This document shows, one piece after another, positions 12,819 to 36,359 of a stretch of 64,000 nt of DNA. This DNA comes from Trichosphaerium sp. ATCC 40318. Its lineage: Eukaryota; Protista; Tubulinea. Positions within the stretch are counted from its first letter, which is position 1; every line of letters starts with the position of its first letter. Both the position numbers and the translations under genes were made by a program. The stretch covers positions 124,001 to 188,000 of the forward strand of contig JALMLS010000548.1 in the NCBI GenBank assembly GCA_038496445.1, in the 5' to 3' direction. The notes under the pieces are model-generated. The model saw only the letters and a list, made by a program, of their open reading frames with translations. It ran no database searches and was not told where the DNA came from.

Positions 12819-13323
12819 ATAGAAAATAGTCACAAATACTAGGATGTTCTTTAACACATTTCTTCGTTACACAAGCACTAATTGCGAGGATTGTATGAAT
12901 GCCAGTGAGTGATTTGATTCCTTCATCTGTCACAGAAGTATGTGAAACATTTATTGTATGAACGCTTCTGAGTGCTCGTATGCCTTCATCTGTTACTGAT
13001 GTACCTGAAACATTAATATAGTGAACACCTTTGAGTGCAGTGATCCCTTTATCTGTCACAGCAGTATAAGAGACATTTATTGTATGAACACCCGAGAGTG
13101 CTTTAACACCTTCATCTGTCACATCTGTGCAATAGAGACATATAGTGTGGACACCTCTTAGCGCTTTGATACCTCTATCTGTTATTTAGGTGCTTGAAAG
13201 GTCTATCTCATAGATACCAGCAAGCGCTATGAGACTTTCATCAGTTATTAAAGTATTTTTAAGTTCAATTCTGTGAACTCCAGAAAGTGCTAACAATTCA
13301 TCATGAAGTTTTATGAAGATCTA
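12819..13323 (-). pseudogene. 3' segment of the disrupted F-box/LRR gene
   Basis: LRR units (xTDEGxKALxGVHTI) with one frameshift near 13300 and an in-frame TAA near 13187. It continues the 36360-36699 segment across the TA duplication (GVHTI|DLHKT). Confidence 0.85.
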
Positions 13324-13374
13324 CAGTACTAAAATAAAAAGAGGAAAAATAGAGGGAATCTCTACAAAAAATCA

Positions 13375-13885
13375 AGGGAATTTTAGACCTCCAATCCCGG
13401 GGTATTTCATCCTAAATAGACAAGGAAATTTCCTTAAAAATCCCTGATGTAATTCTCTCAAAAATCCTTGGTGTAATTTTAACAAAAATCTTTGATGTAA
13501 AACACTAAAAAACCTTATGAAATTTCGTCAAAAATCCTTAGTGTAACTCTCTCAAAAATCTCTGGGGCAATTACTTTAAAAATCCCTTAAGTAATTTCCT
13601 CAAAAATCCCAAAGTAATTTCCTCTAAAATCTCGAAGTAATTTCTTCAAAAATCCCTGGAGTAATTTCCTCAAAAATCCCCAGAGTAATTTTCTTAAAAA
13701 TCCCTGGAGTAATTTCCTCAAAAATCCCTGGAGTAATTTCTTAAAAAATCCCTGGAGTAATTTCCTCAAAAATCCCTGGAGTAATTTCTTAAAAAATCCC
13801 TGGAGTAATTTCCTCAAAAATCCCTGGAGTAATTTCCTCAAAAATCCTTGGAGTAATTTCCTCAAAAATCCTTGGAATAATTTTA
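13375..13885. repeat. Left subterminal tandem array, 24-bp unit GGAGTAATTTCCTCAAAAATCCCT
   Basis: About 11-12 near-perfect copies at 13590-13880, with degenerate copies toward the TIR. Confidence 0.9.
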
Positions 13886-13918
13886 TCCAAACCACGAAAA
13901 AAAAGTCTACTTTATTGG

Positions 13919-16363
13919 TTACAATTCAAAACAATAAGAATCACAAGCAAGGTTTACATAATCACTGTATACATCGTTTAAAGTTGCTAATTTTAAATGC
14001 ACTAAAAATAGTAAATAGCAGAGATGGTTTAAACACACGCACATAAAGTGTAAAATTGCAATACTTGTCCTTCTGTTTCTTTGATTTTAAGGTGTTCTAT
14101 GTAGTTCTTTAGCTGTTCGTGTTTACCCTGAATAGTGCTAACAGTGTCTTTAAAAATATTAATTCTACCGTCGTTGTATTTAGCAATAAGTTTTATGATT
14201 CCAATGCCAGTTCCTCCGTGTGTCGTACAATTTGATAATTGTATGTCATACACCACTTGAGAGTTTGGAATGGACAATTCACTTGTAATCAACTGTTTGC
14301 TGTCATAAAATAAATCAGACGTCGCTAACAATTGTTAATATTATAATTTTTAGAAAATTAAAAATCTAGAACATACCTACAAAAGCGTAATTGGCTTTGT
14401 GTTTAATGACAGCTGTCCAAAACCTGCGTAGTATAGATTTTATTAAATTGAAAAAAGTCAAATCGCGTACCATTTTTTGTTGATTCCAAGACCATCAAGA
14501 GAGGGTTTATTGCACAGTATAACAGTATTATTGTGATAAACTGGAATAAGTGTTATCCAAGATGTTGTGTCATCATGTTTCAAGGACTTAAGCATCATTA
14601 ATAGCTAGAAATTAATAATTACATTTTACACGTACATTTTTTGGAGGAGGAAAAGAACTATCATCAGACAATATGCCCTTGTATACTGTTCTTACAAAGC
14701 TGAACAAACAATTTGCAGTAAAAAGATAATCACTACCACAAAATAAAGGCAAAAAATCATCAAGTAATAAAGTTCTGTTTTCACAATCTCCATCAATGTA
14801 CACTTTGACATTTTTTGCTATTTCGAACTACAAAATAATGTTAACACAAAATTAAAGAGCAAAAACAAAAAATATACTGTTTGTCTAGAGTTGTCGTCAT
14901 CTCTTGCATCACCCGGAAATTGTAAAATATAGTTTTCACGATATTGAATATCCTTGAACTCAATTAAATGGTGAATGATATCATAGCGTACTGTTTCAAG
15001 TTGTGATACATTTTGTCTGAGAGCAGATTGTTGGAAAAGCGGTTGTTCATTTTCAAAGTTGACAGGTTGGTTTGCTCTGGTAGGGACATGACGTTGACTC
15101 AAGTTTCTGCGATTAATATTTTGTCGCGTAATTGTAGGTTGCGATTGTTGTTCATGTTGGCTTCTTAGTTCTACATATTGTTGTAAAGATTGTTGCTCAA
15201 ATGTTCTTATATTGGCCATGCGCTTTTGACGCCTTACTTTTGAAGCCTAATTACAATGATTGGTATTTTTAGTGACAAAATTTATACATACTTGACTTAA
15301 TTGTATTGACATAGGGTCAGGCAGAGAATAGTCATCGATCACGATAGGTTGTACAGAATTGGAAACACATTTGGGATGTGTAAAATCGGAAGTGTTGCTA
15401 ACAGTGAAGTAAGCAGTTGAATGACAGTATAAAATCAAGTAAACGCACAGTATGTCACATAATTTATCATTTTGTATTTTGTATAAATCGTATGCTTCAA
15501 TGTTAAGGACTTGATGTTCATTTTTGTTAGCATAGTCCTTCACTTTCTACAATGAAAAATTAAATGTGTTGTGTTAGAAAAAGATATTCGTACTTTATGA
15601 ATGTATTTGTACGCATCCAAATAAAACTGGTTTGATTGTTCAGAAAACCATTTCTCAAGCGTAATTTCAGCACAAGCTACCATTTTATGCGCTTAAAAAA
15701 AGGCATTAAAACAAAGAAATCTTAAAAGGCTTATATGTACTTAAACTGTCTATATTTTCAGAAACCATAGCTTGGCATTTCAAATATGCAATAAGTTGCT
15801 TGTTGAAAGGCTTTAAAACTCCTTTACAGTATTTTTCCAACACAAGTGCACATTTGGTGATATCGTCATCTGAAGTTATGCTGGTGTATGATTGTTGGAT
15901 ATCACCTATCATGGCGTCGGAATGATTTATTAAGGCATATTTTCCAATATACCAGAGGTATTTTCTTCCCATTGCTCTTTTCCAAACCTGATTTAAATAT
16001 GTAAGTATGGCGTGAAAAAAGACAATAGAAACATCAAACGCACAGCAACTTTACTTTTGTTTTGAAGGGCAAACTTTAAACTTTGTACATCATGATTCAG
16101 GCTGTTTATCGTTGTTTTCATCTCAGATAGCGTATCATTTTGTTTGTTTAATACAAACAAAATTTGTTTAAAAGCGACTAAGCTTGTGTAAGGTAATAAT
16201 AAAACACTGTAAAGTAATAACCAGTACCATTACAAAACTCTAAGACCAATTCGCTATCAATTAAATCTATATTATCAAAATTTATAGCAGTAGGATTTTC
16301 TTGTGGACTGTCCACTCTACGACTGTCCACTCTACGTCTTTTTCTGTACGGCGTCGAAGACAT
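13919..16363 (-). CDS. Transposon ORF2 of the outer element: N-terminal NLS/coiled coil and C-terminal Ulp1-like (probably inactive) domain, multi-exon
   Basis: Spliced translation MSSTPYRKRRR...KRAMGRKYLW...AHKMVACAE...DDFLPLFCGSDYLFT...W|FWTAVI...HGGTGIGIIK; homologous to 26203-28255. Confidence 0.7.
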
Positions 16364-16396
16364 GAACAGTAATTTATTGATGTTTACAAATTATGA

Positions 16397-19300
16397 CTAT
16401 TGAATTAGCATTTTTTGTTGTTTCAAGTGTTGCAGTCTAGTTCTTTCGCTGTCACCTACTATTTCTTCAATTGTTTGGGGATTCATGCTGTTGTAGGCTT
16501 TGAGCGGACAAAATGCAAATATTTGGGTGGTGAAGCCTTTTAAATAGGTCACACCTCTATAATGTACAAACACATTAGCTACTGAGTCATTTTCTAATGT
16601 TAACAATGCGCACCTTGTGAAACAACACACCCACAATCCTATATATTCACTTTCAGCATTGTTGATTATTCTTAGCACACGAACAGGGTTACGATAATGG
16701 AAGCATAGTTGTAAACGAAATTGTTGTCTTTGACTCGTTACAGCAGGTATTGCAGCAACCAAATTCCTATTTTCATGTACTCCTCCAATACCAGTTGTGG
16801 TAAAGTATTGAAGAGAGCCAACAGTAGACATAGCACTGAGCACTCTAATGCTACAGTTTAAGTTAACTCTAAGAGAATCCATAGGAAATTGTTCATCTAT
16901 TGTGTCGCTGGCGAACGTTATTGTACTAAATGAAATAAATTTAAAGTAAAAAGAACATGATAGTGATACGTGTTTTGTCTAAACCCTCTTGTTGGCAAAT
17001 CACAGTCTGGAATCTTTTGGTTCATTGTGTGTCCAACAAATGGTCCATAGTAACCCGTTTTGGGACAGTTGTCGTCATCATTTTTATGCGTAAAATAATC
17101 AGTCTCTAACATTTTTTTGCAATTAATGCAATAAATGACACTGTTATTTTGTATCATCTCAGTTCGCATGAGTGTACACCACTCCTTGAACTTCCTTGTA
17201 GTTTGTAAATGCTTACTAAACAAAGTATTCATATTATTGTGATGCTTTACTGCTTATACTGTTGTACCTCTGTTGGTTTTTCTTTCTTTTTTTTGTTGCA
17301 GTTTTTTTGACACCAAACGACCTCGCCACTGAGTCTTTGAGTGTTGCGTTCGATATATGTGATGCCAGTGGTTGTAATGCAATGTATGCTGCCTTTTTCT
17401 TTGATTCTTGTTTAAATAGAGCCTTGCTAAAAAGTCTGACAGTCCATATTTTTTTGCCTTTTACTCTTGAAATAAACGCCCTAACTCAAGAATTAACATT
17501 ATGATGTAAACCAAGTATTTTACCTGTGTTTTATGGTTTTGTCTTTTTGTTGATACTTTGGTGGCGTGTATACAATGCTGTTTGGAGTAGACAATATGTG
17601 GACGCTTTTAACAGCTTTAGCACCATTAAATTTAGTGTATTGTAGTGTAAAGTCTTTAAAAGACTTGTCATTTGGGTGTACAAGCTCATCAGGTTTACCA
17701 GGTTCGAAAAAATCGTATGCAGAAAGCACAGCAACCTACAAAAACAAATTAATACAATCACAATAACATATAAATTTACCTCTTTATCAATCCCGTATGC
17801 TTTGCTTTTGTCCTGATGATACACAAGGCCAACCCTAGTTTTATTTGTGGTACATACCTCCAAGGTTAGGCCTGGGTACACATGCACCGATACACACAAA
17901 CCAAATTTGTAACGTTGGCTTGTTTCTATTTTGTCTAAATCGTATCCTTTTTTGATGACGGGATGGTTCAAAGCTAGAAATAAAAGAGGTATCACTCCTA
18001 AAGGAAACTGATTATTTCCGTTTTCTGAATTATACACTCTGTCCTTTCTAAAAAGGTTGCCTGAAAATATGTGCCCTCCCTCTATTGGATGTACAGCAGA
18101 AACAATCCTAAATATAGAGTTAATAACACAAGTAAAAAACCCAAAATAGTCAACCTATTAGTGAGATTGTTGTGGCCTCTTGATGTTTCTATAGCCATAG
18201 CATCCATTCCAACATCATTTATAAGAAGTCTCGTGCTTGAATTCCAGACATTTTTGATGTGTAGTAACGGAGACAAGCTGTCATCGTCATCATCCAGGGT
18301 GTACAATGCATTTTGAGCATTACCACTAAATATGTAATTAATTAGCACTAACAACACGAATAATATGTACCAAAGGAAAAAGCGTGACAGTTTTTTCTTA
18401 AGATCCTTTGTACAATTGTAAAGCTTTTCAACTATGGCTGTCATAGGACAACTTTGTTGTAAAGCTAAAGCAAAATAAAACTTTAACACACGCTTAAGGT
18501 CATCTTTTGAACGCGAAATCGCACTACAACCAATTAAATCAACAGACATAACATATGTTGACATACTAGCGTTCTTTGCGAATATCAAAAAACCTATCAT
18601 GATAGTCGACTTTGTTGGCGTGCATGTCTTCTTCATTGCCATTGTTGTCTAAATTAGCAATGTTAATCTAATCAAGCACAAAAACATACACCATTGAAGA
18701 TGTTGAAAATATTGTACATACCACTGCGATTACTGGAAGACTGTACACCATCGTCAAAGTCGGAGACATCACCTTTACCACTGGTGCTGTCTTTGTTGAT
18801 GTTGATGCTGAAAGAACGTATGCCATCGTCATTCTCATCACTGGAGACGTCATCCTCATCACTGAAGACGTCATCCTCATCACTGGAGACGTTATCCTCA
18901 TCATTGGAGCTGTCTTTGTCAAAGTCAATGTAAAAAACCATAAGCCATTGTTGACATTGATGCGTACCATCTTTATCACTGGTGCTGTCTTTGTTGGCGT
19001 CAATGTTGGAAGGACTTATACCATCGTTGTCATTGGAGATGTCATTCTCATCACTGGAGCTGTTTTTGTTGGCGTCAATGTTGGAAGAACTTATACCATC
19101 ATTGTCATTGGAGACGTCATTCTCATCACTGGAGCTGTCTTTGTCAAAGTCAGTGTAAAAACCATAAGCCATTGTTGAAGTTGGTGTGTACCATCTTTAT
19201 CACTGGTGCTGTCTTTGTTGGCGTCAATGTTGGAAGGACTTATACCATCGTTGTCATTGGAGATGTCATTCTCATCACTGGAGCTGTTTTTGTTGGCGTC

Positions 19301-20008
19301 AATGTTGGAAGAACTTATACCATCGTTGTCATTGGAGACGTCATTCTCATCACTGGAGCTGTCTTTGTCAAAGTCAGTGTAAAAAACCATAAGCCATTGT
19401 TGATGTTGATGCGTACCATCTTTATCACTGGTGTCTTTGTTGGCGTCAATGTTGGAAGAACTTATACCATCGTTGTCATTGGAGACGTCATTCTCATCAC
19501 TGGAGCTGTCTTTGTCAAAGTCAATGGCAGAAAAGAACATGTCATTGATAAAGATGAAGGCATAATATGTACCATTGGTTCTATTAAAGTGGTTACCAAG
19601 TGGCTTTGTTCGAAATGGTGATGGTCCTAGTAAGCTTTAGTTAAAATAAAAGTGTAATAAAAGTATAGCAGTACTGTATGCGTTGTTTAAATGCCTATCA
19701 AACAAGTCTTTGATATTTGTTCGTTTTTCAATAAATTCAATGTCTTCATGACAATAGTCATATATACAAGCAGACCTATTAATATTGACTGAGATTTTAC
19801 ACAACTATAAGATATAAGACGTACTTTTTAGTTTTTTCTTTAAAATAAACGACTCCATATTTATCGTATGTCGGTTCTGCATAATGTATAACCTTCACCT
19901 CCGTATGGTACATTTTGTTTAATGCACTTTGTAGGGTTGCAAATCGTTTTGATTTTTGTTCTCTCTTTCTTCTTTTATGTGACTTAGTTGTCACACAAAC
20001 AGGGTGAG
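16397..20008 (-). CDS. Cargo gene: acidic repeat region, AlkB-like 2OG-Fe(II) dioxygenase, CxxC..H..C motif and SRA/YDG-like domain (5' end uncertain)
   Basis: Manual splicing gives a continuous frame: NRIVSAVHPIEGGHIFSG...CVSVHVYPG...GLVYHQD...VAVLS...NSIVYTPPKYQ...KHRAF...KKIWTVR (AlkB-like), then YYGPFVG...FTTTGIGG...NPVRVLR...EYIGLW (SRA-like). Confidence 0.7.
18780..19520 (-). repeat. Coding tandem repeats (about 224-bp period) encoding D/S/N-rich units, each carrying a putative intron
   Basis: Three copies of DFDKDSSSDEND...SSNIDANK with putative GT-AG introns at 18914-18967, 19139-19191 and 19363-19416. Confidence 0.8.
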
Positions 20009-20019
20009 CTAATCATTAG

Positions 20020-20340
20020 TCAGTGTTTTAAATTCATTTAGTGTTGAACAAAAAAAAACCCTGTCTACAAAGCGTATTAAATATCGCGGTGGCCACGAAA
20101 GCCGATGAACGCGTAAGAGCAGGTTGTAAGCCGTTTTAAATTCAATTAGGGTTGAACAAAAAAAAACCCTGTCTACAAGGCGTATTAAATATCGCGGTGG
20201 CCACAAAAGCCTATGAACACGCGTAAAAGCAGGTTGTAAAGCTGTTTTAAATTTGAACATATTAAAAACCGCGTCAACAAAGCGTATTAAATACGACAAA
20301 GCTACGAAAGCCAATGAACGCGTAAAAACAGGGTTTAAAG
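20020..20340. repeat. Tandem repeat, about 109-bp unit, 2.5-3 copies
   Basis: gttgaacaaaaaaaaaccctgtctacaa..cgtattaaatatcgcggtggccac at about 20043 and 20151, with a degenerate copy at about 20252. Confidence 0.85.
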
Positions 20341-20649
20341 CAAATTGGCCAAAAAATATCCAAAATAGCGTTTAACACAACGTATACGCATTATACTTTT
20401 AAAAAGCACGATGAACTGCCAAAAACAGGCGATTAAAGTGCATTTCATTGTAAAACAGGTAAAAATTATAAAACCTTCCAAATACTATCGCTAGATGTAT
20501 CAATGTGTGTTTTGAATGACTTTGGGGAAAAAAGAAGTAAAATAGTAGCTTATACACGTTTAGGGTATACAAGGCTACAAAGGTACGTACGTTTACGTTT
20601 CCTCTCCATTTGATGTATTGTATTGTATTAAATGGGTAAAGTCCAGTTC

Positions 20650-22300
20650 AAGTCAATCTTGTGCTGAACTCTTCTCCGAAGGCCGATAGACGGCTCGCAT
20701 GTACGTCACGGCGGCAATAGCCGCTGTGCATCTTTTCTTAATCCTCCAAAAGAGGATTTTAACATGCAAGAAGATAGTTCAGATAGTAACCCATCAGAGT
20801 CCTTCAAAGCTCGCTGAGGCGGCTCCAGGACATTGAATATTAGATTTACATGATTGGCGTGCCAGCAAAACGTCGCATCAGGTGAAGCATTTTCTTCATT
20901 CTCATCGACATCAACCGTTCCTAGAAACGCCAATAAGTGTACACTCAAGCGGAAACATAGGTATGAAGTTTTTTGAAGTGAGCAAACTATTGAGTGTAGA
21001 GCTTTGCTAAAGGTTTTTCCATGAACGTTATTTGTTATTGCTGCTACAAGAAGGAAAAAGCTTGATGTATACCGCTCTTTGCGAGATCAAGCAACAATAT
21101 CTTACCATCCTTCCAGGTTGCCATAAAAGTTATTCTTTTGCGTAAGGTCTTTGGTTCTATTGGTGTTGTCATTGTAACGCTTGAAAATTATGAAAAATCT
21201 TACTCACTGGCTTCACTTGAATCAGAGTCGTCAAAGGCAAGCAAATCATCATTGTCCCCCTCCATATCATCAAGGCCGTCATCTTGTGATACATACCCTG
21301 ACAAAAAATGTACTTACATTTGTCTATGTAGGTACCTACGTAAAAATGAATCTTTACCATAAATGGTGTCAAAAAGGTGCAAATGTATAAAATTACATTT
21401 GGGCCATTAACTCCATTTTACGTACTTTCAAAGATAAGATACAGTCACCTCTTGTTGAGTTGCTTCGAGTGTCAGATGTATGTCTAGCGCCTAGGTAAAA
21501 AGATTACAAATCAACTGCTGTTGATACGATGACAAATTGGTAATGAGTTAGCACAATTGGTGATCAACGGCCTTGTGAAACTGTGGCACAATTTCGTCAA
21601 CTGTTATAAGCATACCTGACATACCAAAGAAACATATTAATTGCTTCAATTCAGCTGTTCTAAACAGCATAGCAAACACTAAAACTGAAAGCTTCTTAAA
21701 CCGCTTTTTTGTTCTAAAGACGCTGTAAATAATGTGTACAATGAAAGTACAAGCACTGTACCTATTCATTTGTCACTGTGACACACGCCGTCTGTGTTGA
21801 GCTGAAATCCATTTGCAGACTTTGCTTGGGAAGTATTAAACGATTTTTGACCCATTGTAAAGTGAAATTGTTGGAAATAACTTAGAGTGGACGCAACAAA
21901 ATAGCGTTTGGCGTCATCCTATAGCAAAGTTGGTATGTACGGACTTTCTACACAATGGAATTACCTTTGGTAGCCGCTGTTGGAGCTGTAGAGATCGTGT
22001 AAGGTACCCCAACGTGAGTAACACAACCTTAAGATAAAGGTCATCTATACCGTTTTCCGTTGGCGTGAGGGGTGTCATCCCACAACAGGTGGAAAATCAA
22101 GCTCCTACAATGCATTTGAGTTTTATTAGTCCAAACAAATACGATAGTACATCCAGTTAAATCAAGCATCTGTGACGTGTTGTTCAAATACATTCTCAGC
22201 AATCTTGACAGCTAAAACCAACGTTGACGAATTATAGCTGTAATTTCATGTCAAGTACGCAATGAGCCTTTATGTACCTATTATTACCAAAAGTAGTTAA
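20650..22300 (-). pseudogene. Degenerate multi-exon gene fragment inside the outer element
   Basis: Series of GT...AG intron-like segments and short coding-like pieces (DDGLDDMEGDNDDLLAFDDSDSS; GTVDVDENEENASP) with stops; no family recognised. Confidence 0.35.
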
Positions 22301-22694
22301 AAGCTGTAGTGCAACAGTACAGCCGTAACGTTGGGCGATGAAAGCACACTCAACAACACAATACATACAACGTGTACAAGTGACCATTCAAAACTAAATA
22401 GGCTCCCACATCACACATCAAATTGACACCAAAGATGCCACAAAAAGCAAGAAAAAACGATCGACAACAATTAAAATACTTTTGCAATTCAATAAATTCT
22501 TTCATTGCGATAACACTCACTATACAACATAACTAAACATTACACAATAGTACATTATTTTTTAATAGGTTTTGACATGTCAGTGGTTAGGGTTACAAAG
22601 AAAACCTAATACTAGTTTAGTTATAACTTACAAATTAGGGTTCAGCATTTGAATACTGTGAAATGTTGAGTTCGTACCGTAAGGACAAAGGAAG

Positions 22695-23005
22695 CGCGAC
22701 TAAAACAAGGTAGAGAAATTGTGTTCCCGCCTAAATTGATAAGTAACAGGTAAAAAAAGCGCAAATAGTTGCAAACGTACGTATCATAATCTCCAGTAAG
22801 CGCACAACTAAAACAAGGTTGAGAAATTGTGTTCCCGCCTAAATTGATAAGTAACAGGTAAAAAAAGCGCAAATAGTTGCAAACGTACGTATCATAATCT
22901 CCAATAAAAGCGGGCAACTAAAATAGGGTTGAGAGGTTGTTTAACCGCCTAAATTGATAAGAACCTGCAAACGATAGCGTATTTAGTTGTGAACGTACGT
23001 ATTTG
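22695..23005. repeat. Tandem repeat, about 108-110-bp unit, about 3 copies
   Basis: taaaacaagg..gagaaattgtgttcccgcctaaattgataagtaacagg..caaacgtacgtat at 22701 and 22809, with a degenerate copy at 22919. Confidence 0.85.
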
Positions 23006-25006
23006 CGTAGAAGATCACATAAATATCACGGTAAACAAACCTCAATGACAACAACAACTGAGGCACACAAGACAAAAGGAGGCCAATCCTTTTCGGGTCA
23101 GAGCTGTTGTTATCGAGTGTGGCGCGTTTTTTTATTGTTTTTTTATTGTCAACATTTTTCAAACACATTTATTGTTTGCGGAGCACTGTGTACCTGGTGT
23201 TTAAACCGCTCAGGCGTTGGTATTGCGGGGTAGGAATTGTGGAGCTAGGATTACATTAAGAACACTGAGCTTAAGAGGTAACTGAACGGGCACAATGCAA
23301 TCAGGCGTGGTAGTGACAAATACAAAGTGGAATTTTATCATTGCACTAACTTTTTGGGCTCCAAGGTACAATGAGCATCACATCACTGACACAACATGCC
23401 CGAATGACGCTATGGAGGGTAAAAAAAAATAAATCACCAACATTTGAGCATTGCGTACTATTACTATGCCCACACGCGTAGATTAGCCGTGTGTGTGCGC
23501 CTAGCGTTGTTTTTGTAACACTAAACGCTGTTGGAACAAAAAACTCCCAAACTGAGCCTAAACGCACGTACAGTCATCATAAAGCGCTTTAGGTATTGTA
23601 CATACCGTTTAATGGGCACAGGTAACACTTTGGGGCAATTGACGCGTTTTATGGGATAATTTGCCAAAAATGAAAATGAAGGTCCAGCACTTTTGAAACA
23701 GTGCTTTTTATAGCAATTAATGATGATTTGAGCGCTTTTGGGTAGGACAAAAAAGTAAGGATAGCACTAAGTCACGTTTTGCCTATATACGGTAAGTAGA
23801 ACACCTTCCTAATTTGCTCTCAAACGATGTAAAACTGCTGTTATTCCCCAATGTAGCAACGCAGACTAATGAGCGCTAGTGCTCAGAGTAAAATTTAAAC
23901 ACTTTAGGTGTAATATGGCACATTACGCTCTGAAACGTAATAGCGCTAGTTCAAGGTACTAAAGCGCTTACATAATCAATCACATGTTTTAGAGTAATTA
24001 CACAGAGACCACAGTTCGAGGGTCATAAGTATAATATTGGTCCTAACTTTCTACCAAATAAAAGAAACAAGTCAGCACCAACATCAACTTCCACCAAGAG
24101 ACACACAGTGACATCCATCAACAAAAACTCTCCAAAAAGCAGGAAGATGGACCTTGAGCTAGATGGTAAGTGTAATCATATAATTTTCATTTTTCAGACT
24201 TGGACCCTACAGTAATCAATCTAATGTGGACACAGAGACCCCAAAACACCCCTGTCTAAAAGGATGTGGACACTGTCATAAGGAATGCACATTTCAAAGC
24301 ACAGACTGTAACAGTGAGGTTGTGATCCTCCGTTCTAAAGGGATCATGATCATACCAGAAAGGCTGACCAAGTTTGCAGATTGCTGTAACACATTTACGT
24401 TTGTATAATAAAACGAAGGCTCTGTGAGATCGCATGGCCTCCATTGCAGATATTATTGATTAGCTTGTTTATTGCCTTTTGGTGATCCTGCACACCTTTC
24501 TCCTTCGTTGCTCGCACTGTGCAAGTGTTGTTTGCTGAACCCACAGGCGCTAAAAATCCATCCTCTTCTGCTGCCTCAAAGAAGCATAGAACAAAGTCCC
24601 TGACTTTAAAACTTTCATTTCACTTCCGTTACAGGTGTGTTATATGAGTCATTGTTATGTGACTGTGTCATCTGGTATTCTATCAGATGTGACATCTGGT
24701 GTCTATTGGCATTGCCATATGGGATGAATACTTGTGCTGGCACTTTGTTGTTCCTCAAGCTTTGTAATTGTGCTTCATCACCCACAACGCCTGCACTTGT
24801 TTTATGAGTGTGTTGATCATTGTCTTTGTTGACACAGACAAATGTGTATGTTTTGAAGTCACACTTTCTGTAATCTCAACACTAGTTTGTTGAACCATAA
24901 CAATGAGAAAGTGAAATTTGTTTAGTTTTCTTTTGCGAAAAATTCTATCAGTAAAAAAATATGTTTTCAAAACAGAACAAATTTATTATAACAGATAATA
25001 TTACAG

Positions 25007-25745
25007 ATGACCTCAGAGGTCATTTCATGCCATGTGTGTAAAAAACGTATACGGAAATCCAATCTGGCCAGACATTTACGAACTAGTTATTGCCAAAGTT
25101 TAAAGTACAGTCAATCTTGTAGTGCGCCACAGGTAATGCTTTTAATAGCAATTGATTATTTTTAAATGTTTTACAAAGGAAAACAACACTATAAATACCA
25201 CCAACTCATCTAATTATGCCTACAATACATTGACAAACAGACATTCGCTAGTTCAAAATGAAATGTACACTTATACTCAACCAAACCGTTACATTCAACC
25301 ATACCACGATATAAATATTTCACATCGCCAATACACCATGCGACCTCAATACACCTCACAATTAGAGCATTTTCCATTCGAAAATACAAAACAAATACAA
25401 CTTAACCTACAAAACAACTTACAAACTCAAATGACATCTATTTATGAGGCACCAATAGTTGACAAGATATTGTACCTAATTAGAAAACTACAATTGGAGC
25501 AACAGCTTTCAGATGAAAATGTGAAATTGTGGTTGCAATTTTACAATACGACAGCTATGCTATTACCTTCAAATAACTCCAACAACCTCTTTTCAACTAA
25601 GCTTAGAACAACATTGGCCAAACAAATGTTTACTAAGGTACTTGCTCCTACAATTAATATTTTTATTGAGACTTTATAGTACACTGCAAAGCTCGCAATG
25701 AAAAAAATTAGTGTCAAAAGAAAAAACAAAAGACCTTTGACAATA
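25007..25745 (+). CDS. Outer-element CMC transposase, 5' part (interrupted by the nested element)
   Basis: MTSEVISCHVCKKRIRKSNLARHLRT (Zn finger) and DKILYLIRKLQLEQQLSDENVKLW; ends at KRPLTI at the TA duplication. Confidence 0.8.
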
Positions 25746-26202
25746 CAGTACCAATTCATAGCTGTTATTTTTGCTGTAAATCTTAGCTATTTTTGATATA
25801 CTTCTTGTAAAGAAATAAACGGGAAAACTCCCACTTTTTTCTTGGAGAATTAAGAGCGAAAAATGAGCAACCACAAAATTTTTACCTAATAATTTGTTGA
25901 TACTTTTCACAGTAAATACGTCTTAACTACACATGAAATATCTACTATTTAGTAGCCAATTTTACTATGCAATCAGCGTGAAATAAATTATAATTCAAAC
26001 TCAAATTGTGCCCTTTTATTTTTGAATTACTTGTTAATTAACTAAACTATAGTGAGTATTTCTGTATTAAATAAGGTCAAATTTGCACTAAGTAATCCTG
26101 AATTACCAAAGAAATACTTGGTATTTTCAACAGAAATCAGCGAAAATTACACATGATAAAAAACCAGTAGTTTTTATTGGCACTACAGCCGCTTTTACTA
26201 CA

Positions 26203-28255
26203 TCAGTTTGTTGCACCAAATACAAAATGGTCAGGGTTAGATTGCGCTTGATAACACAGTTGTTGCATTGTGACCATCCCTTGTTGCACTACAAAAAAAC
26301 AGTCAACGCAATAATAAAACATAAAATCACTTGCCTTTTGCATACTCTTCCTTAAAAGGAACATGGTCATCAGCAGTTACAAGGCGAGCAAAACATTCAG
26401 CATCAAGGTGTTGGGCCTTGCCTGTGCATCTGTACTCCGCCTTAGGAGTTTGAGATTCATCATGAAACCACTTTTGTTTTAAAGTTTTGATCAATCCTAT
26501 GCCAGTTCCACCAGGAGTGTGAATGGCCGACATACAAATAGTGTTAGCTATGTCAATCTCATTTATTCCAAAGTGATCAGCAGCCACCACACGAACATCT
26601 GCAATAAGTCTTTTGTGTGCTAAAAACAAGGTGAATCAACAATAGTACAAAATGAAAAAACCAAAGCAATTTCAATCCGCCATACCCAAAAAAGTAAAAG
26701 ATTCATTGTGATAAACAAATGCTGTCCAATACCTATTTCAACATTAACAAAACAAAGGGTATTGCAACATACCATGGCATCGTAACATCACAATTGAGCA
26801 GTGTAGGATGTTTACAAATGTATACTTCGTTTTGTTCACCATAACACACTGGAACAGGCAACACCAATGGCATGGTAGATCCAGAACCTGCTGTCTTTGA
26901 CAAGTAAGAAACAAATTGTAGAAGAAAAAGTTCAAAGGTTGGAGTAATACGCACCAGAGTTCCAGCCAAGATCTGCTGTTTTGTTGCCACTGCATACTTT
27001 TCAGTCCGCAAAAATGGAAGAAGGGCATCGACAGTGAAGAGAAAGTCTTCAGCACAAAGTAGAGGTAAAAAATGTTTCATAGCCACTTTTTCTTGTGTTG
27101 GATCTGTGGTTACTACAAATTCTGTGTTTGCTGGTATCGAACTCTAACACAGATTACTACACTGTAATTAAATAAAAAAAACCAAACGTACTTGAGCGTC
27201 ATCTAACATTGAAACATCTTCCGTATCCTTTTTTTCACATGGCTGTTTAAGTGCTCCAACAAACACTCCCAAACCGAATTCATCATCTGGCTTTTGTTCT
27301 TTTTGCTTTGGTTGTATTGGTGTTTCTTCAAATTCATTTTGATATTTCGTCACCTGAGGATGTCTGTAATCCAAGTCATCTATTACTGGCTTCAAAGAGG
27401 GGTGATGGGACACCAAGGCGCTGTATTCTGCCAAAGCGACTGCCACAGTAGGTTTTTTACCATTGAGCAATGTTTTAGAATTTTTAACCAATTCAATCCT
27501 CTACAATAAAACGCAAAATAAGCAAGTTGCAAACTCAATTTAAACACTAACATAAAGAAAGTACTCATACGCAGCTCCATAATGCATTTGGTTAGAGTAT
27601 ATGTTGGCCATAGTCTTCTCAGCAATTGCTACACACTTGTGGGCTTTAAATGAAACAAATTAGCAGTTGTTACTAAAAAAACTAAGTATTCGCACCCACT
27701 GTAACCATGTCCATTACTGTAGCACGGTAAGTGCTTCCACAAGCATACTTTATCAATTGATTCACTGGACCATATGTATCTTTAAAGACTCTGGTTGTTC
27801 TGAAATGATCCATAGCACGTAAGTCACTGTAAGTAACATCCCTTCCAGTATGTTTCTGAAAAACGTCATTTATAAGTTTGAAAGCCTGGTTTCTTTGTTT
27901 TAGAACATCTACAAACTCAGCTGGCATCCACAAAAAATTGTAAATCAAGGCTCGTTTAACTTCCTATGTGTCATTAGTCAACCAACGAAAGCAAAGAATG
28001 GAAAGAAAATACCAAGGTCTGTTGTTGAGCCATCTTTTCACGCTGTGCTTTAATCTCTTCACTTAGTTTGGTAACAGTTGTTTTGAATTGAAAGAACTCT
28101 GCTTTGAGTTGCTTTAAACTGTTATCAAACGCATTAATAGTTGCAATCATTTCTTTTTGGTTTTTAAGTATAATAACAGACGCTTTGTGTAGCTGTTGAA
28201 AGTAAGGGATCATATCCTCCTCTGTTAGCTGTTTCTTTGTAGGCGGCTGAGACAT
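26203..28255 (-). CDS. Transposon ORF2 of the nested element (homolog of 13919-16363), multi-exon
   Basis: MSQPPTKK coiled coil...KRALIYNFLW...AHKCVAIAE...HFLPLLCAEDFLFT...W|YWTAFV...PGGTGIGLIK; intron positions are shared with the outer ORF2. Confidence 0.75.
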
Positions 28256-29160
28256 GTTGCCTGAGTGGTTGTACAGAAAATATTGAGTAACACGACCACG
28301 TGGATTGGTATTCTTAGTATTATAAGAATATTTCAGAAGTTACAAAATTGGAATTGTAATCGCCTTGAAATTAATTAGCGTGTATGTAAATTGGATTTTG
28401 TAGCATACCACATCTGACCAAGCGAAAAGTTACAAATTCCGTAAACCCACGTGATAAAAAACCAAAACCAAAATTTATTTACATATTTGATACCTGGTGG
28501 CGTTTACAAAGCTATGGTAGTGGCGTTATACTGGCTTGAATTTTTTTGTATGATTTTTCACGCTATAATCCTGTTGATGCCATGAGAGCGCTATTGGCAG
28601 CGTAGGTAGACGCTATTTGTAGCGTTAGTAAATTTTACACGTATCTGTACAATACAGTTGGTTTTTCATCACGTAAAACAACGTTGAAGAGTGTTTGAGT
28701 CTAATCTTACCATACAGTTGCTTTTGGCATCGTAACTTTTCTTTTAGCTACCGAATGACTTTTGTGGCTTGAACGTACCATGTACAGTGCCTAGGTATTG
28801 TGATCTTTCTTGTCATGCCGGGTAATGGTTAGACGGTGAGCTTACATTGAAAATTTTGTTATCACTTAAATTACATAAGCTGTACTGCAAACGCCAAGAA
28901 AGAGCTTACCGTGATAACAAGCAGGTCAAGTTAATGCAATCCTAAGAATTCCTTAAAAAATACACGTGTAGTTTTATTAAGAACAATGTACTGCACTGTT
29001 TTTAGCCAAATACATTTGCGTTCTGTAGAAACCATTGTGGCAGCATCAAACAACCTTAAGGTTCTTTGAAATGTATTCAAAAAAATACCTCTGTGAAAGC
29101 AGCCGTGGCAGTACAGCGCAGGTACATCCCAAAAGCGCTTTGATAAATAATGGTGCCTAG

Positions 29161-30048
29161 ATACTATCACTGACCAGCTTACCTCTCGAATTACAACTGT
29201 ATACAATGGATTTAGATTTTGGAGTATATAAAATCTGGCCACTGTTAAACAGAGCAGCCTCCTTTTTCCGCTTCAACAAATCCATTGAAAAGAGTGGAGT
29301 ATGGAAGTCACAGTTTAAGCGTTACTACTTCAAAGATGGACTTCAACATGGTGAGTGCAAAGACTTTTATCCAGACGGGAGGGTACAATACATTGTAAAA
29401 TATCATAAAGGATGTGTTTTGAGCGCTTTGCGGAGAAGTTATTATGAAGGAGGTGAAGCCATGGTGGTGGAGTTCTTTGAAGAACAAAAAAATCCCCTTG
29501 TACAAGACTTTGTAGATTTGAAGAATTTGTATGAAGAAGTCACCTGCACTTGTGGGTACGACTTAGCCACAAAAAGTGACATCGTTTATGTAGCACTTAT
29601 GCATCTTTTCTCTGGCAATGCACGTGATGTCATTGAATACCATATCCCAAGCAAAGACGTTTTCACCAAAGAAAAAATAGATGACATGTTTCTTTCAAAT
29701 GTATTGGCCAATAACATACCCAAAGCTTGCTTTGGTTCTATGAAAACTAGCTATAGATGCATTCCGAAAGATTCTAATTACAAAGAAGGTTTGATAATGA
29801 CGTGGAACAGCCAACAAGCCTTAACACACATTCGTCAGTACAAAAATGACCAACCACATGGTTCATCACTTTCCTTTCACAGCAATGGTGCTGTTTGCCA
29901 TAGATGCCATCTCAGTAATGGTGAACTGCATGGAGATTGCAGTGAGTACTATGAGAACGGTCAAGTGAAAATGCAAAGTAGATACGTGAATGGTAAATTA
30001 ATTGGTAAACTCACACTCTGGTTGAAAGATGGCGCTTTAAAGAACTAA
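29161..30048 (+). CDS. F-box plus MORN-variant (MORN_2/YwqK-like) repeat protein, cargo of the nested element; 5' exon uncertain
   Basis: LTSLPLELQLYTM F-box-like motif in frame just upstream of the 29206 ORF; repeats of HGxxxxYYENGQxKxxxxYxNG. Confidence 0.7.
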   Translation: MLSLTSLPLELQLYTMDLDFGVYKIWPLLNRAASFFRFNKSIEKSGVWKSQFKRYYFKDGLQHGECKDFYPDGRVQYIVKYHKGCVLSALRRSYYEGGEAMVVEFFEEQKNPLVQDFVDLKNLYEEVTCTCGYDLATKSDIVYVALMHLFSGNARDVIEYHIPSKDVFTKEKIDDMFLSNVLANNIPKACFGSMKTSYRCIPKDSNYKEGLIMTWNSQQALTHIRQYKNDQPHGSSLSFHSNGAVCHRCHLSNGELHGDCSEYYENGQVKMQSRYVNGKLIGKLTLWLKDGALKN

Positions 30049-30199
30049 ACCTTGTACCTAATAAAGAAAACACGTGTTTTTGAATTTAAAGTCAAAGCTG
30101 GTTTTCAAATCGTTTGTTTTGACTTTAGCAGTGTAGATGCTTGGAACTTTTACACCATGTGCGTTTCTTCCGTTTTGTAAACTGTTTCATTTATTTTTA

Positions 30200-31653
30200 T
30201 GCCAAGCAACTCAAAGGCACCTTGCACACTCGACAGGGAAAACTAGCTGCATGGTTCTTTATAGCTGTAGTACATAAATAAAACCATAAGTACAAAATCA
30301 AAGAATGAGCTATGTACACAGCAGCTTGCAAGTTCCAGGCATATCTCCAACTATTTTTTCAAGCCTAGCATACACATTGAACGTCTATCAAATATGATAT
30401 AGTTTTAGCATAGGCTTGTTGTAAATTTTGGCGCACCTTATCCAATTTAGAACAATAACACTTTATGCCATAGTGCAATGCATTCAAGTCTTTTACTACA
30501 TAATCTACAGCATCTTCAATCATGATCTTGGATGGTAAAACCATCAGAGGCATCACACCTTGCATAGTGCCACTGTTGGGCATGTTCCATATGACCATGT
30601 ACATGGGTCCCACATTGTCTTTTTTGTCATAAGTAAAGTCATCGTGGCATAAATAAACTACAAAAAGAAAGTCAGTAATTGCCCATCTAGTTGTCACGCT
30701 CACCTGCCAGCCGAATGTTTTCACTTTTTTTTTCCACATCTTCATACAACTTGTAGTAGCGTTCTGCAGTGTCTGGGCCCTCTATGATCCTGATCCTTTG
30801 TGTCTTTCCTTTCAATTCCATTTTGGAGACATAGTGAGGATACTTAGATGTGTCATTGATGGCATCTCTGTCTGTCAGGTTGTATACCAACAGTCTGATA
30901 TATTGTGACGGCGGAATAAACATCAATTTCTTGGTTTTGGTCACATCCACTCTGACAGACATTTCTTTCAGTTCAAGTGAAGGTGTAAACTGCAAGTGAG
31001 AAGAAATATTAATTTTACAATAACTGTAAGTTGTTACGTACAGCTTTGAAGGCGGCCTTGGCTCTTTTTGGTGTCAAAAGATCATAGTTGAATTGCTTTT
31101 TGCCACTTTTGTCCATCAGTTGAGCTGTTGATCTTATAAAATCCAGCCATATTCCAACGTTATCATCTGACAATTGATTATCTAGCTGCAGTTTTCTAAC
31201 AAGACACAACACCTTTTCTTCAGGGGTTCCATTTTTTATTGAGCGCCACATAACCCTTTCACTTATCGCATGCTCCAGTTTGGGTTCTGTGGTATTGTAA
31301 AATGGAGACTTCGATGGTAATCTCTCAGGCAACATTGGCACAGGTTCAACTAGTGAAGCGTCACACAATCTAGAAGGATATTTGAATGGTTGAGGTTTGT
31401 CCAGGGGTTTGAGTGCTAGCTTTGCATTCGGTTTTGGTTTTGAGTAGCACGTTTTCTCCTTTTCCGTGATAAAAGTATCTTGATTTGTGCGTTGTTGGCG
31501 TTTAAAAGCTGGGATTAAATGCTTGTAGTATCCGCCATTGCTGGTATAACCACCAGACTTGTGTAGTGCTGTCTTGACATGTTTAGCGTAATGTTTTTTG
31601 AGTATTCTGGATCCACAGCGTAAACACGTGATGCGAGGGTCTTTTTTGCGCAT
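30200..31653 (-). CDS. Nested-element CMC transposase, 5' half (in an inverted segment)
   Basis: MRKKDPRITCLRC..HVKTALH Zn finger, EKVLCLVRKLQLDNQLSDDN, YLCHDDFTY..GPMYMVIWNMPN, VGDMPG and FPCRVC. Confidence 0.8.
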
Positions 31654-31696
31654 CTTAATGAGTTTTTTAATACCTAAACATAGTGTGCATAGTGGA

Positions 31697-33467
31697 GACG
31701 TCAAGGTTTGTCAGCTCAGAACTGCCAAAAAAGTCTTGGATTTGAAAGGTAATAGTGGACAAACAAATGAGGAGAAGTTGAAAGAGCTTTGTTTAAGAGA
31801 TTGGGTATGCTTTTTTTGGGTTTTTTTTACTAACATTGCCACAGAGTCCATTTTTAACGCTTCCTAACTTTGACATTCATCAACATTCTCCCTTTTGCCC
31901 TTTTCACAATGTGCTGTTGGGTGTTTCCAAACCCATAATCAGTGCAACATTGGATTGGTTGCAAAGCCATAAGGGACGAAACTGCAGGAACTTGGTGAAC
32001 AACCAAATGCAATGGTACAAGCGTCAAAAGCATGTACATCTTGTAAAGTAAGTTCTTGTGTTTATCTTTGCATGGTTTTTTCCTTATACATGTGTAGAAC
32101 TAAAGAGTTGTGGGACAGCCACGGTGCACTCAACACAGAGCGCCAATGGGATGGCAATGACTTTAGGTCATTTTTACAGATGGCTTTGTTTGTTTTTAAG
32201 CCCTTAGTTTCTGATAAGATTATGGGGGTGTGGTAAGTGCTTTTCTAATTGTTTCATTGTAATTTAAATAATTTGTATCAGGAGGACCTTTTTGGAGTAT
32301 GTGGCATTGATGTCTAGGGACTTTTTACAGTATGACAGGTTGAATGACATCACTGTCCAAGCCAAGCGATTGTTGAAAGAGGTGGCAGCATGTTTGCCAG
32401 GTGCAGCACTGTTTTTTTGCTATTTGGTGACACTCACTTAGAAGCCAACATCTCCACTCCAAATTGTCATGCGTTGCTTCACCATGAACAGCATGTGAGA
32501 ATGTTCGGCATGCCCAAACATTACAGGTATGGGCAATGCTGGTGATCTTATTTAATTTTGTTTTAGTACCTACAGTTGTGAATCTAGGCACATAAAAGTG
32601 AGAAATTGGAAGCATTCCACCAATGGATTGCACAAGGAGAAGTGCGTAGATTGAAACAATAGTTTTTTGGTGACTTTGACAATGACAATTGTTGTTTATT
32701 TTTTTATTACAGTGACATCATGGTGCGAGAGATGTTCATGTATGCCTCCTGTGCTTTAAAAGACTTGAGTGTTGTTAAAGTTCATGTTGAAGCCCGAAAG
32801 GCATTCACTGTGTCAGTGCCAGCATTTTGCAACATTCCACAGGCACAATGGACTTTGCGTAAGTGAAGTTTTTTTCCTGTAATTACTTTTTACACAAAGT
32901 CTCCTTGTTGTAGATAATGCAACCTCAATGGAACTGAGCACAGAGTTGAGAGCAGCTTTGATGAGGGATGTTTGCAAAGAACAATATGGTGATTTGGAAT
33001 CTTGTTCTGTGGTGGCCTACAAAAAAGCAAAATGTGCTGCTAGAGAAATGACGTTGTCTACCAAGAACAACACAAGCTTTAAAAGTTGGAGGCCGATTCA
33101 TGGTGAAACCAGGAGCAATTGCATTTATTTAGAAACCACCCACATAGTGATGATGAGTGGTAATGTTTTTATTTTTGGCAGGTATTGTGGTTATTTTATG
33201 TGATTGTTATTGACACAAATGCATGTAGGCTATTTGAGCTTTACAATCCACAAAAGAAATATGATGAAGCTACTAATTTGGTGGCGTGCGTGTTTTTAAA
33301 TATGTGCTGAATATCTTTTTGTTGATCTCAAAACAAGGTTGCAAAGTGTAGAAGGCTTGGCATGTGTACCTTTGAGCATGGTGTACAAGCAAGCCTGCTT
33401 AATACCAGATCCTGTTGTTTCTGGTATGTTTTTGGACAACTACTATCAATATGCAATACCTAATTAA
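31697..33467 (+). CDS. Nested-element CMC transposase, 3' half
   Basis: DVKVCQLRT...HSPFCPFHNVLLGVSK...WDGNDFRSFLQ...CHALLHHE...FGMP...SCESRH...NYYQYAIPN*. Confidence 0.8.
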
Positions 33468-33669
33468 TATTGTAATTGTGCGGGTTGTGTGTTGAAGCAC
33501 TTTTTTTACAATAAACAATGCACTTCTTTTTCTTTATTATTTCATTGGTAAATTTTTTTTATTTTAAGTGGCCGGCACTGAAATAGTAGCGAAATATTTA
33601 AAAACAGTGAAATACGAATGAAATCATTATTATTTATCTTTTATTTCTTTGAAGTGAATTGGTACTGTA

Positions 33670-36155
33670 CCATTTATCCCTCCTTCTGAATATGTCAGAC
33701 TCCTTATGTATCACCTGACAGATAGAAATGCCATCAATGACACTTCAAAATATCCTCATTATGTTTCTAAGGTTGATGTGAATGGAGATGTACAACAATC
33801 CCACATTTTTTCTGGTCCCGAAACTGGAATTCGATACAAACAAATGTATTCCGATGTCAGTAACTTATCAAGCAATGTTAAATTAGCAGGTATGTTTTAT
33901 TGCCATCACAGTTTTATTGTTGTTTAATACCTGTTTTGTAGCTTATCTATGCCATGATGACTTCACTTACGACAGAAAAGAAAGTTTAGGACCAATGTAT
34001 CTTGTAATATGGAACATGCCAAATAGTGACGAAATGCAAGGAAAAATGACTTTAATGGTGTTACCCACTGATGTCATTATGGTTGATGCAATGAAATACA
34101 TTACAGATGATTTGGCATCACTTTACAATGGAATAGATTTGTATTGTCCCATATTGAAACAAGTACTTTATTCATTATTTTTTTCTCCCGAGTTTTAAGT
34201 TGTTTTTAGACTTTTACCGTCTATCTCAGATTGGAAAAACTCTTAGGAGATATGCCTGGAACATGTAAGGTTGTTTGTACGTTGTTTTATAGTTACAAGC
34301 CAGATTGATAACATAATGTTTAGCTATAAAATCATATCAAGCCAATCTTCCATGTAGAGTTTGTAAATTAACCAAAGAAGCAATGGCAGAATTAAAAGAA
34401 TGTCAAACTCTGCGAACAACAAACAAAGCATTAAAATTGCATGCAATTGATTCATCTCCATTTCATTTACATAATTTGTGTTTAAAAGCTTGGGTACGAA
34501 TCGACAAATTTTTAAACTAATAATATTAGTCTCCATTTCTATTTTTGCCTGATTTTGACATTTTCCAACACACTCCTTTTTGTCCGTTTCACAACATCAT
34601 TTTGGGAGTTGCAAAACAAGTTATGATAGGCACTTTTGAGCTTTTAGAAACGCATCAAGATGTGAAAATTATTGCAAGAGATAAAATCAAAAAGGGAGTG
34701 GAGTGGTATAAGCGGCAAAAACATGTTGTTGTCACAAAGTGGGTTTTCTTGTTATCATCGCTTTTTATTTACTTTTATTAAGAATAAAACCAATTTGGGA
34801 CTCCAAAGGACAGTGTACTGTTTTAAAAAAATGGGATGGAACTGATGTTAGATCGTTTTTACAAATGGCATTATTTGTTTTTAAACCTCTTTGTTCTGAA
34901 AAAGTTTTAAAAACGTGGTACAAATAATGTACTCTGTTTATAGTTTACTGATTTTATTTTAGGCAAGTGCTTTTAGGCTATGTTTGTTTAATGTCAAAAG
35001 AATCTTTAAAAGCAGAGCGTTTGCCACAAGTTACAACAGAAGCTAAACGTTTAAAAAAAAAAATTGGAAAATATTTACCAAGTACTTTTTCGCTTTGTTC
35101 TTCTCTAAAAACACTATTTTCACACTATTTTTAGATGTCAACACTAAAACTCCAAACTTCCATGCTATACTTCATCACGAACAAGCCATCAGATTGTTTG
35201 GTATGCCAAAATATTACAGGTAAAAATTGTCTTGATAAAAAGCAATTACTAACGGTACTAGCACCTACAGTTGCGAGTCCAAACATAAAAAAATCAAAAA
35301 TTGGAAACATAGCACCAAAGGATGTAAAAAAATTGAGTACTAGAATCCATAATGGTCTTTAAACACTAATATATATCAGTGACATTATGATCAGAGAACG
35401 AGACTCAATTTCGTCATATTTATCTGGTGACTTCCAAACTCATCTTTCGCAATTATCCACTAAAACAAAAAACCAAAGTAAACGTATTACTTACTTAGCT
35501 CGACAAGTACACAACAATTTAGAAGCTGAGTGGACCTTACGTGAGTGCATCTAAACATTTTAATTGCTTATCTATTTGAAATTAGATGGAAAAAAAAAAG
35601 TACAAGAACTATCAACTCAAATGATAAATGTGTTGATTCGTGACACATCTGTGCAATCGTTTCAAAACACTGATTATCCAATTGCTTTTTACTCATCTGC
35701 AAAGTGTATAGATAGAGATGTATCAATTTACACCTCACCTCGTAAAAACACATGTTTTAAAACGTGGCGACTTAACTTTGATATTGAAAGTAGAAGTGAT
35801 TGTATTTATCTTGAAACAACTCACATTATTCAACTAAACAACGATGATGAAATTTATGTTTTTGGAAGGTATTAAATGACATAAACTATAACAATGAATT
35901 ACAATCTAAGTATACTAGGTTGTACACCTTGCTTAATCCTCACGAAAGATATGATTCAGCTACTAATCTGGTTTCGTGCGTTTTATTGATATATTGTTTT
36001 CAAGCTCATGTTTATTTTACAATAGCTTAATTCGACAAAATGACTTGGCTTGTGTGCCTTTGTTTATGGTGTTTAAACTCGCTTGTATCATTTCAGATCC
36101 TATTGAAAATGACAAATATTTGGTTAACTACTATCAACAAGCAATACCAAATTAA
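33670..36155 (+). CDS. Outer-element CMC transposase, 3' part
   Basis: CMC signature in order: D (HDDF), D (GDMPG), CxxC (CRVC), PFHNIILGVAK, HxxxH (FHAILHHE), E (SCESKH); ends NYYQQAIPN*. Confidence 0.85.
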
Positions 36156-36169
36156 CGTCAACAATAATA

Positions 36170-36340
36170 AATTGCAAGAGATTTTTCATAAAATTTCATG
36201 TTTCAAAAGAGATTTTTTCAAAAATTTCATAGTCAATGAGATTTTTTCAAAAATTACACTCTTTGTCAAAGAAAATTTTTTAGAGAATCTCCAATATATC
36301 ACGTTTTTTGGGTAATTTGAGGAAATCTCTATAAAATTCC
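36170..36340. repeat. Right subterminal repeats (inverted relatives of the left 24-mer)
   Basis: gagatttttt(c)aaaaattt units and ggtaatttgaggaaat resemble the reverse complement of the left array. Confidence 0.6.
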
Positions 36341-36359
36341 CATTTTCATTTTAGTACTG

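Follow-up and report, generated by a model that had tools for sequence, protein, structure and literature searches.

Positions 13324-36359 of a 64,000-nt stretch of contig JALMLS010000548.1 from the amoeba Trichosphaerium sp. ATCC 40318 (hereafter the window, to which all coordinates without a contig name refer) most probably constitute a real 23-kb cut-and-paste DNA transposon, which we assign to a divergent branch of the CACTA/Mirage/Plavaka group. We refer to this 23,036-bp unit as the outer element and to a related element inserted within it as the nested element. Together with its relatives elsewhere in the genome, the outer element allows a divergent CACTA-like family in an amoeba to be described completely and with defined boundaries, including autonomous elements, short derivatives, and the rule by which the target site is duplicated. 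Such elements are missed by Pfam, and hence by standard annotation, and in this genome they would be mis-annotated as ordinary genes.

Ends of the outer element and its insertion site

The outer element begins at 13324 with CAGTACTAAAATAAAAA, and its right terminus at 36359 reads, when reverse-complemented, CAGTACTAAAATGAAAA. The two ends form a terminal inverted repeat (TIR) of 17 bp with one mismatch, and their likeness extends inward to 36 nt at 78%. The dinucleotide TA stands on both flanks (13322-13323 and 36360-36361). These boundaries, including the single mismatch and the TA on either side, are those proposed in the first-pass annotation, which also put the length without the nested copy at about 15 kb, in agreement with the 15,112 bp that we obtain. 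The subterminal arrays that it described are present as well, but they are markedly unequal. On the left, a 24-bp unit is repeated 19.2 times (13427-13883, Tandem Repeats Finder [TRF]), whereas the right side holds just 2.6 copies of a 29-bp unit (36176-36255). The window contains 27 occurrences of the motif TCAAAAATCYC, compared with 4.6 expected, and 17 of the 27 are inside the left array, whose repeated sequence probably represents protein-binding sites.

12826..13323, minus strand: host leucine-rich repeat (LRR) gene, left of the insertion, including the TA at 13322-13323 (63-bp periodic repeats; 21-amino-acid LRR units in translation)
13324..13340, plus strand: left TIR of the outer element (CAGTACTAAAATAAAAA)
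13427..13883, plus strand: left subterminal array, 24-bp unit, 19 copies (TRF; motif enrichment)
36176..36255, plus strand: short right subterminal repeat
36343..36359, minus strand: right TIR of the outer element (CAGTACTAAAATGAAAA on the minus strand)
36360..37500, minus strand: host LRR gene, right of the insertion, starting with the TA at 36360-36361

The outer element is flanked on both sides by minus-strand LRRs that recur every 63 bp. When the element and one TA are excised in silico, a canonical LRR unit spans the junction, reading GVHTI on one side and DL on the other. Because the junction reads as a normal repeat-unit start, the insertion into the LRR repeat looks precise and appears to lie inside one unit. 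The first-pass annotation had removal of the element rejoin an LRR gene; the repeat unit is indeed restored, but the gene has no open frame, since the frame shifts approximately 30 nt past the junction and an in-frame TAA follows approximately 150 nt on. The host gene is therefore either decayed (a pseudogene) or affected by assembly errors, such as those at homopolymers.

Related elements and target duplications across the genome

Family-type ends are found 137 times in the genome, compared with 20 times for a reversed control pattern, so that the end pair of the outer element, for which the first-pass annotation had proposed a genome-wide search, is not unique. Its CAGTAC tips, taken there as characteristic, are correct for the outer element but represent only one variant of the family terminus, CAGT(A/G)(C/G). 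Altogether, the family comprises approximately 25 transposase copies and more than 100 ends of miniature inverted-repeat transposable elements (MITEs). Most of the 137 ends belong to derivatives of approximately 1 kb tipped CAGTGG and CAGTAG. These derivatives form an abundant non-autonomous family, with ends CAGTGGTAAAATG... and CAGTAGTAAAATAG... and varied 2-bp duplications; three examples are as follows.

C1:1224432-1225466: non-autonomous element
C16:493156-494195: non-autonomous element
C128:175777-176816: non-autonomous element

To describe the target duplication, we examined 24 end pairs, namely 22 from the genome end search, the nested copy in the window, and its twin on contig C270. 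The flanking dinucleotide is identical on both sides in 17 of the 24 pairs and may be TA, AT, AA, TT, GT, TG, or TC; 13 of these 17 matching duplications are not TA, and one of the 17 is on C330, a contig that appears to duplicate C297. The rule for the family is thus a duplication of 2 bp without sequence specificity, perhaps occasionally of 3 bp. Since the relatives duplicate many dinucleotides, the TA flanks in the window are not diagnostic, and the earlier proposal of TA as the target duplication does not carry over to the family.

The nearest relative of the outer element is a 12.6-kb element at C129:9421-21987 with approximately 66-77% DNA identity, which we characterized from search coordinates and two short sequence stretches. 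Its end types match those of the outer element, and it has a duplication of its own (TC/TC). The gene order is also alike in the two elements, with a transposase gene reading toward one end, followed by accessory gene 2 and accessory gene 1. Furthermore, a 910-bp derivative on C411 has left-type and right-type ends paired as in the outer element. The presence of near-identical copies and of many short non-autonomous derivatives suggests that the family is or was recently active.

The transposase and its placement

The transposase gene of the outer element consists of approximately 14 exons at the right end of the element and reads toward the terminus. It is interrupted by the nested element, and its parts are as follows.

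25001..25745, plus strand: 5' exons (zinc-finger exon, exon 1), cut by the nested insertion (open reading frames [ORFs]; homology to the nested and C129 copies)
33668..36155, plus strand: remaining exons
33941-34165, plus strand: first-D exon, DDFTYD...GP.Y.V.WN.PNS
34210-34269, plus strand: GDMPG mini exon
34323-34496, plus strand: CxxC exon (exon 4), CRVC
34530-34739, plus strand: H exon, CPFHN
35125-35220, plus strand: H(3-4)H exon (exon 8), FHAILHH
from 35260, plus strand: E exon, CESKH
ending at approximately 36152, plus strand: C-terminal exon

The first-D exon has approximately 25 copies in the genome, which fall into at least four subfamilies with 27-73% amino acid identity, and the D, D, C(2)C, H, H(3-4)H, and E motifs are kept in the exons of all of these subfamilies. 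The CMC signature read from the outer element in the first-pass annotation is thus fully present and lies in conserved exons. It is also the pattern that defines CMC transposases (PMC12730594). Intron presence varies among copies: the H(3-4)H and E exons are separated by an intron in every subfamily except a distant one on C86 (at approximately 250.5 kb; 2855-3007 of the extracted stretch), in which they are contiguous.

The connection to known families was obtained through a remote homolog. A profile of the first-D exon (exon 3), compared with 1.84 billion representative proteins, gave seven matches, of which one is full length (P0005, E=1.6e-4). P0005 is a 616-amino-acid protein that has no Pfam family and is encoded by an intronless ORF on a 3,441-bp metagenome contig (ENA ERZ27251196 k141_413140). 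Four exon profiles are colinear on it, at residues 79-139, 173-210, 251-295, and 391-410, and the numbers of shuffled decoys scoring as well are 0, 0, 7, and 3 of 2000 each, respectively; the match at 173-210, for which no decoy was as good, is that of the CxxC exon. In P0005 residue numbering, DDFTYD, GDMPG, and CESKH correspond to D82, D166 (within GDTPA), and E422.

The ESM Atlas model of P0005 (predicted template modeling score [pTM] of 0.68) aligns over 444-473 residues, with template modeling (TM) scores of 0.65-0.69, to clusters whose members carry PF18759 Plavaka or PF02992 Transposase_21 in 93-100% of cases. When exon 3 is used alone, the clusters reached are RAG1_RNase_H, Transposase_21, and Plavaka; their values of 0.84-0.87 fall short of the 0.9 line of the tool and are taken as a lead only. 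A word-indexed protein search with P0005 returned P0005 itself only, and neither the exon-3 profile nor P0005 gave more than chance matches among PDB sequences. A MAFFT alignment of 67 exon fragments to P0005 was discarded, because it spread the fragments over the full length of the protein.

Because the motif pattern, the colinear exon-profile matches to P0005, and the predicted fold of P0005 point the same way when taken together, the amoeba family probably belongs in the CMCT clade. Within that clade, the family appears very divergent in the sequence searches, with no match to PF02992, PF18759, or PF18758 and one full-length relative in 1.84 billion proteins, and it may plausibly represent a distinct CMC lineage.

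The ends of the elements agree with this placement. Members of the CMCT clade have 5'-CA..TG-3' termini and duplications of 2-5 bp (PMC12730594); the amoeba family has CAGT...ACTG ends, with the 2-bp duplication in the 17 of 24 pairs described above. Like CACTA/EnSpm elements (En/Spm, Tam1, Cactavine), its members are large, encode at least one further gene beside a DDE transposase in which C(2)C and H(3-4)H motifs are present, and have subterminal repeat arrays and CA..TG ends. Unlike them, they end in CAGT(A/G)(C/G) rather than CACTA/CACTG, duplicate 2 bp rather than 3 bp, and show no PF02992 match. They also differ from the Kyakuja-Dileera-Zisupton (KDZ) elements, in that there is no PF18758 match and the duplication is 2 bp, compared with 8 bp for Zisupton. 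Published CMC-type elements already include examples of 2-bp or TA duplication and of a dioxygenase gene as cargo (PMC12730594), and the family is therefore not a new kind of element.

The family may simply be a member of a named CMCT lineage (Mirage, PlavakaA/B, ESTA, or Lanisha) that has diverged too far for Pfam and does not form a lineage of its own, an alternative that we regard as possible but tentative. Mirage and PlavakaA have 2-bp duplications and the same motif set, PlavakaB duplicates 2 or 3 bp, and CA..TG ends are common to all of these lineages (PMC12730594); the clusters nearest to the fold of P0005 are those of Plavaka and Transposase_21. ESTA, an EnSpm-like lineage of rust fungi, duplicates TA, and some of its families include a gene for a TET/JBP dioxygenase (PMC12730594). 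The amoeba family resembles it in having TA flanks on both window elements, an accessory gene beside the transposase, and a CMC-like transposase that has diverged too far to be classified by ordinary means. However, the termini differ from TGT..ACA of PlavakaA, CATCA..TGATG of PlavakaB, and CACCAC, with which the ESTA consensus sequences start. In addition, PF18759 has no match in the amoeba family, and ESTA is defined by TA duplications in a fungal host, whereas here any 2-bp sequence is duplicated in an amoeba.

Two further explanations concern the outer element itself. The TA flanks on both window elements and the tips starting with CAGT are shared with Tc1/mariner, and Tc1-type termini are often CAGT. 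The ends might thus belong to a Tc1/mariner/pogo element and be moved by an ITm transposase encoded elsewhere, with the CMC-like gene as a passenger. We consider this extremely improbable, since ITm elements insert at TA and the AT, AA, TT, GT, TG, and TC duplications of the relatives come close to refuting it. Moreover, the CMC-like gene is the one gene that adjoins these ends in every full-length relative, no ORF of the element has a Tc1, mariner, or helix-turn-helix Pfam match, and, unlike Tc1/mariner elements, those described here have another type of transposase, are far larger, and contain long subterminal arrays, which are typical of CACTA-type elements. It is also very improbable that the 23-kb unit is a composite, i.e., two separate short family elements around unrelated DNA, or an assembly join. 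Short derivatives with the same ends do exist, the middle of the unit is a mosaic of other repeats, and no full-length second copy of the outer element is present in the genome. Nevertheless, its left-type and right-type ends are paired and oriented as in the 910-bp derivative, TA stands at both of its flanks, which together restore one LRR unit, and its genes follow the order of the C129 element with its own TC duplication.

Several observations weigh against a cut-and-paste transposon of the CACTA/Mirage/Plavaka group. The outer element has no second full-length copy, and its mobility is deduced from that of its relatives. Among the 24 end pairs, seven have no common 2-bp flank, and two of these exceptions (C270 and C411) read TAA/TAA, as if 3 bp had been duplicated. 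All transposase searches were run exon by exon. A Pfam search with ten transposase exon pieces gave nothing meaningful, including for PF02992 and PF18759, and a six-frame search of the genome for PF18759, PF18758, and PF02992 gave nothing usable, with a single unrelated match for PF02992 (E=0.4). The comparison with PF18759 proposed in the first-pass annotation, made as this profile search, accordingly found no match in either the exons or the six-frame genome. The link to known CMC families passes through one intermediate protein and a language-model structure and is best treated as a lead, and AlphaFold2 run on the single sequence of P0005 gave an unusable model (predicted local distance difference test [pLDDT] of 36).

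Nested element, accessory genes, and history of the locus

The nested element, a younger relative of the outer element, is bounded by a 13-bp TIR, CAGTACCAATTCA. The coding exon that it interrupts belongs to the outer transposase gene, and the insertion point lies a few codons upstream of the conserved PFIPPSEY. The features inside the outer element, other than its own transposase gene, are as follows.

13919..16363, minus strand: accessory gene 1, multi-exon (weakly conserved in the nested element and the C129 relative)
16400..19636, minus strand: accessory gene 2, multi-exon, with an acidic repeat region, an H-x-D exon, a Cys-rich exon, and an SRA-like exon
20614..24761, unstranded: patchwork of other dispersed-repeat fragments, no recognizable genes (neighboring short pieces each resemble a different contig, at 74-93% identity; tandem repeats D6 and D7 lie inside)
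25746..33667, plus strand: nested sister element, 7,922 bp, TIR CAGTACCAATTCA (TA at 25744-25745 and 33668-33669)
26330..28339, minus strand: accessory gene 1 homolog of the nested element
28419..28886, unstranded: unclassified dispersed repeat within the nested element, 70-bp core at 28443-28512
29206..30048, plus strand: intronless 280-amino-acid MORN-repeat ORF in the nested element (PF07661 MORN_2, E=1.1e-9, above the cut-off)
30215..31669, minus strand: segment inverted relative to C270, which breaks the CxxC exon and puts exons 1-4 of the nested transposase on the minus strand (BLAST; exon order and strands)
31797..33464, plus strand: 3' exons of the nested transposase, which encode the H, H(3-4)H, and E motifs and the C-terminus

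A second copy of the nested element is located at C270:18953-26874, is 99.4-100% identical, and has TAA on both flanks. A BLAST comparison of the two copies shows that 1,455 bp of the window (30215-31669) is inverted relative to C270:23421-24881. The inverted segment has nine mismatches with the C270 copy, compared with none in the 4.5 kb upstream, and the breakpoints, read from the sequences, have in common a 6-bp AGG(C/T)A(C/T) microhomology in inverted orientation. The C270 copy has every transposase exon on a single strand, and its CxxC exon runs through the breakpoint. Since this exon is intact there, as it is in the outer and C129 genes, the change is assigned to the window copy, which would either carry a derived inversion that breaks its transposase gene or be mis-assembled. 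The search for nested-family ends gave six exact matches, beyond which it was too noisy to recognize further ends.

The two accessory genes of the outer element account for the cargo of several intron-containing genes claimed in the first-pass annotation. Both are multi-exon genes, as stated there, but the claim was overstated: both are shared with the C129 element, and the region from 20.6 to 24.8 kb is the mosaic of repeats. The exons of accessory gene 1 have 31-44% amino acid identity to the nested element at 26474-27137, and the gene has a DNA match at C129:19373-21376 and no Pfam match. Accessory gene 2 has paralogs only at C129:17000-18691, inside the element (42-55% amino acid identity), and twice on C409. 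Its H-x-D exon is conserved, and it has a weak SAD_SRA match (E=0.027) that lies below the Pfam cut-off. Ulp1-like regions occur in some plant CACTA families (PMC2528002); for the accessory genes described here, Pfam and PDB searches that included the C129 and C409 paralogs gave no support for a Ulp1 or dioxygenase identity.

A more specific proposal is that the family constitutes an unnamed deep CMCT lineage with CAGT termini and a sequence-independent 2-bp duplication, whose accessory genes include a reader/eraser of DNA modification (SRA-like plus H-x-D oxygenase-like) used against host silencing. We regard this proposal as unlikely. If the shared accessory gene did act on modified DNA, transposons outside the fungi would also have recruited such enzymes, which would bear on how elements escape silencing; the SRA/oxygenase reading, if true, would mean that Amoebozoa have a parallel, of independent origin, to the fungal transposons that carry TET/JBP.

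The boundaries, duplications, copy structure, motifs, and remote homology are observed in the sequence data; the catalytic mechanism, the binders of the subterminal repeats, and the roles of the accessory genes are inferences. The transposase would recognize the CAGT... termini and the subterminal repeats and excise the element. Reinsertion with a 2-bp staggered cut would then produce a 2-bp duplication of no fixed sequence, which would be TA here by chance. The basic element is approximately 12-13 kb in length and encodes three genes, namely the transposase and two accessory genes.

The nesting places three events in order, i.e., the insertion into the host, the insertion of the sister element, and the inversion of part of the sister copy. 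In the history that we propose, the outer copy would have inserted into the LRR repeat gene, after which the 7.9-kb sister element would have landed in a transposase exon and disabled the outer copy, and finally the 1.45-kb inversion would have broken the sister copy itself. The outer copy would also have gained fragments of other repeats.

Some minor observations concern the interior genes and repeats. The segment at 18672-19636 on the minus strand is a highly acidic, Asp/Ser/Asn-rich tandem repeat with units of 75 and 224 nt and is apparently the N-terminal part of accessory gene 2. On C409, a 26-kb contig on which no transposase exon was detected, the accessory gene 2 homologs form an inverted pair (6800-8377 on the plus strand and 17900-19479 on the minus strand); these copies may be the host source of accessory gene 2 or belong to another type of element. 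The 280-amino-acid MORN_2 ORF is also carried by the C270 twin. The dispersed repeat at 28419-28886 contains no tRNA (ARAGORN) and corresponds to no Rfam family, and tRNA and Rfam scans of the whole window were likewise empty; its 70-bp core is found at more than 25 genomic loci with 80-85% identity.

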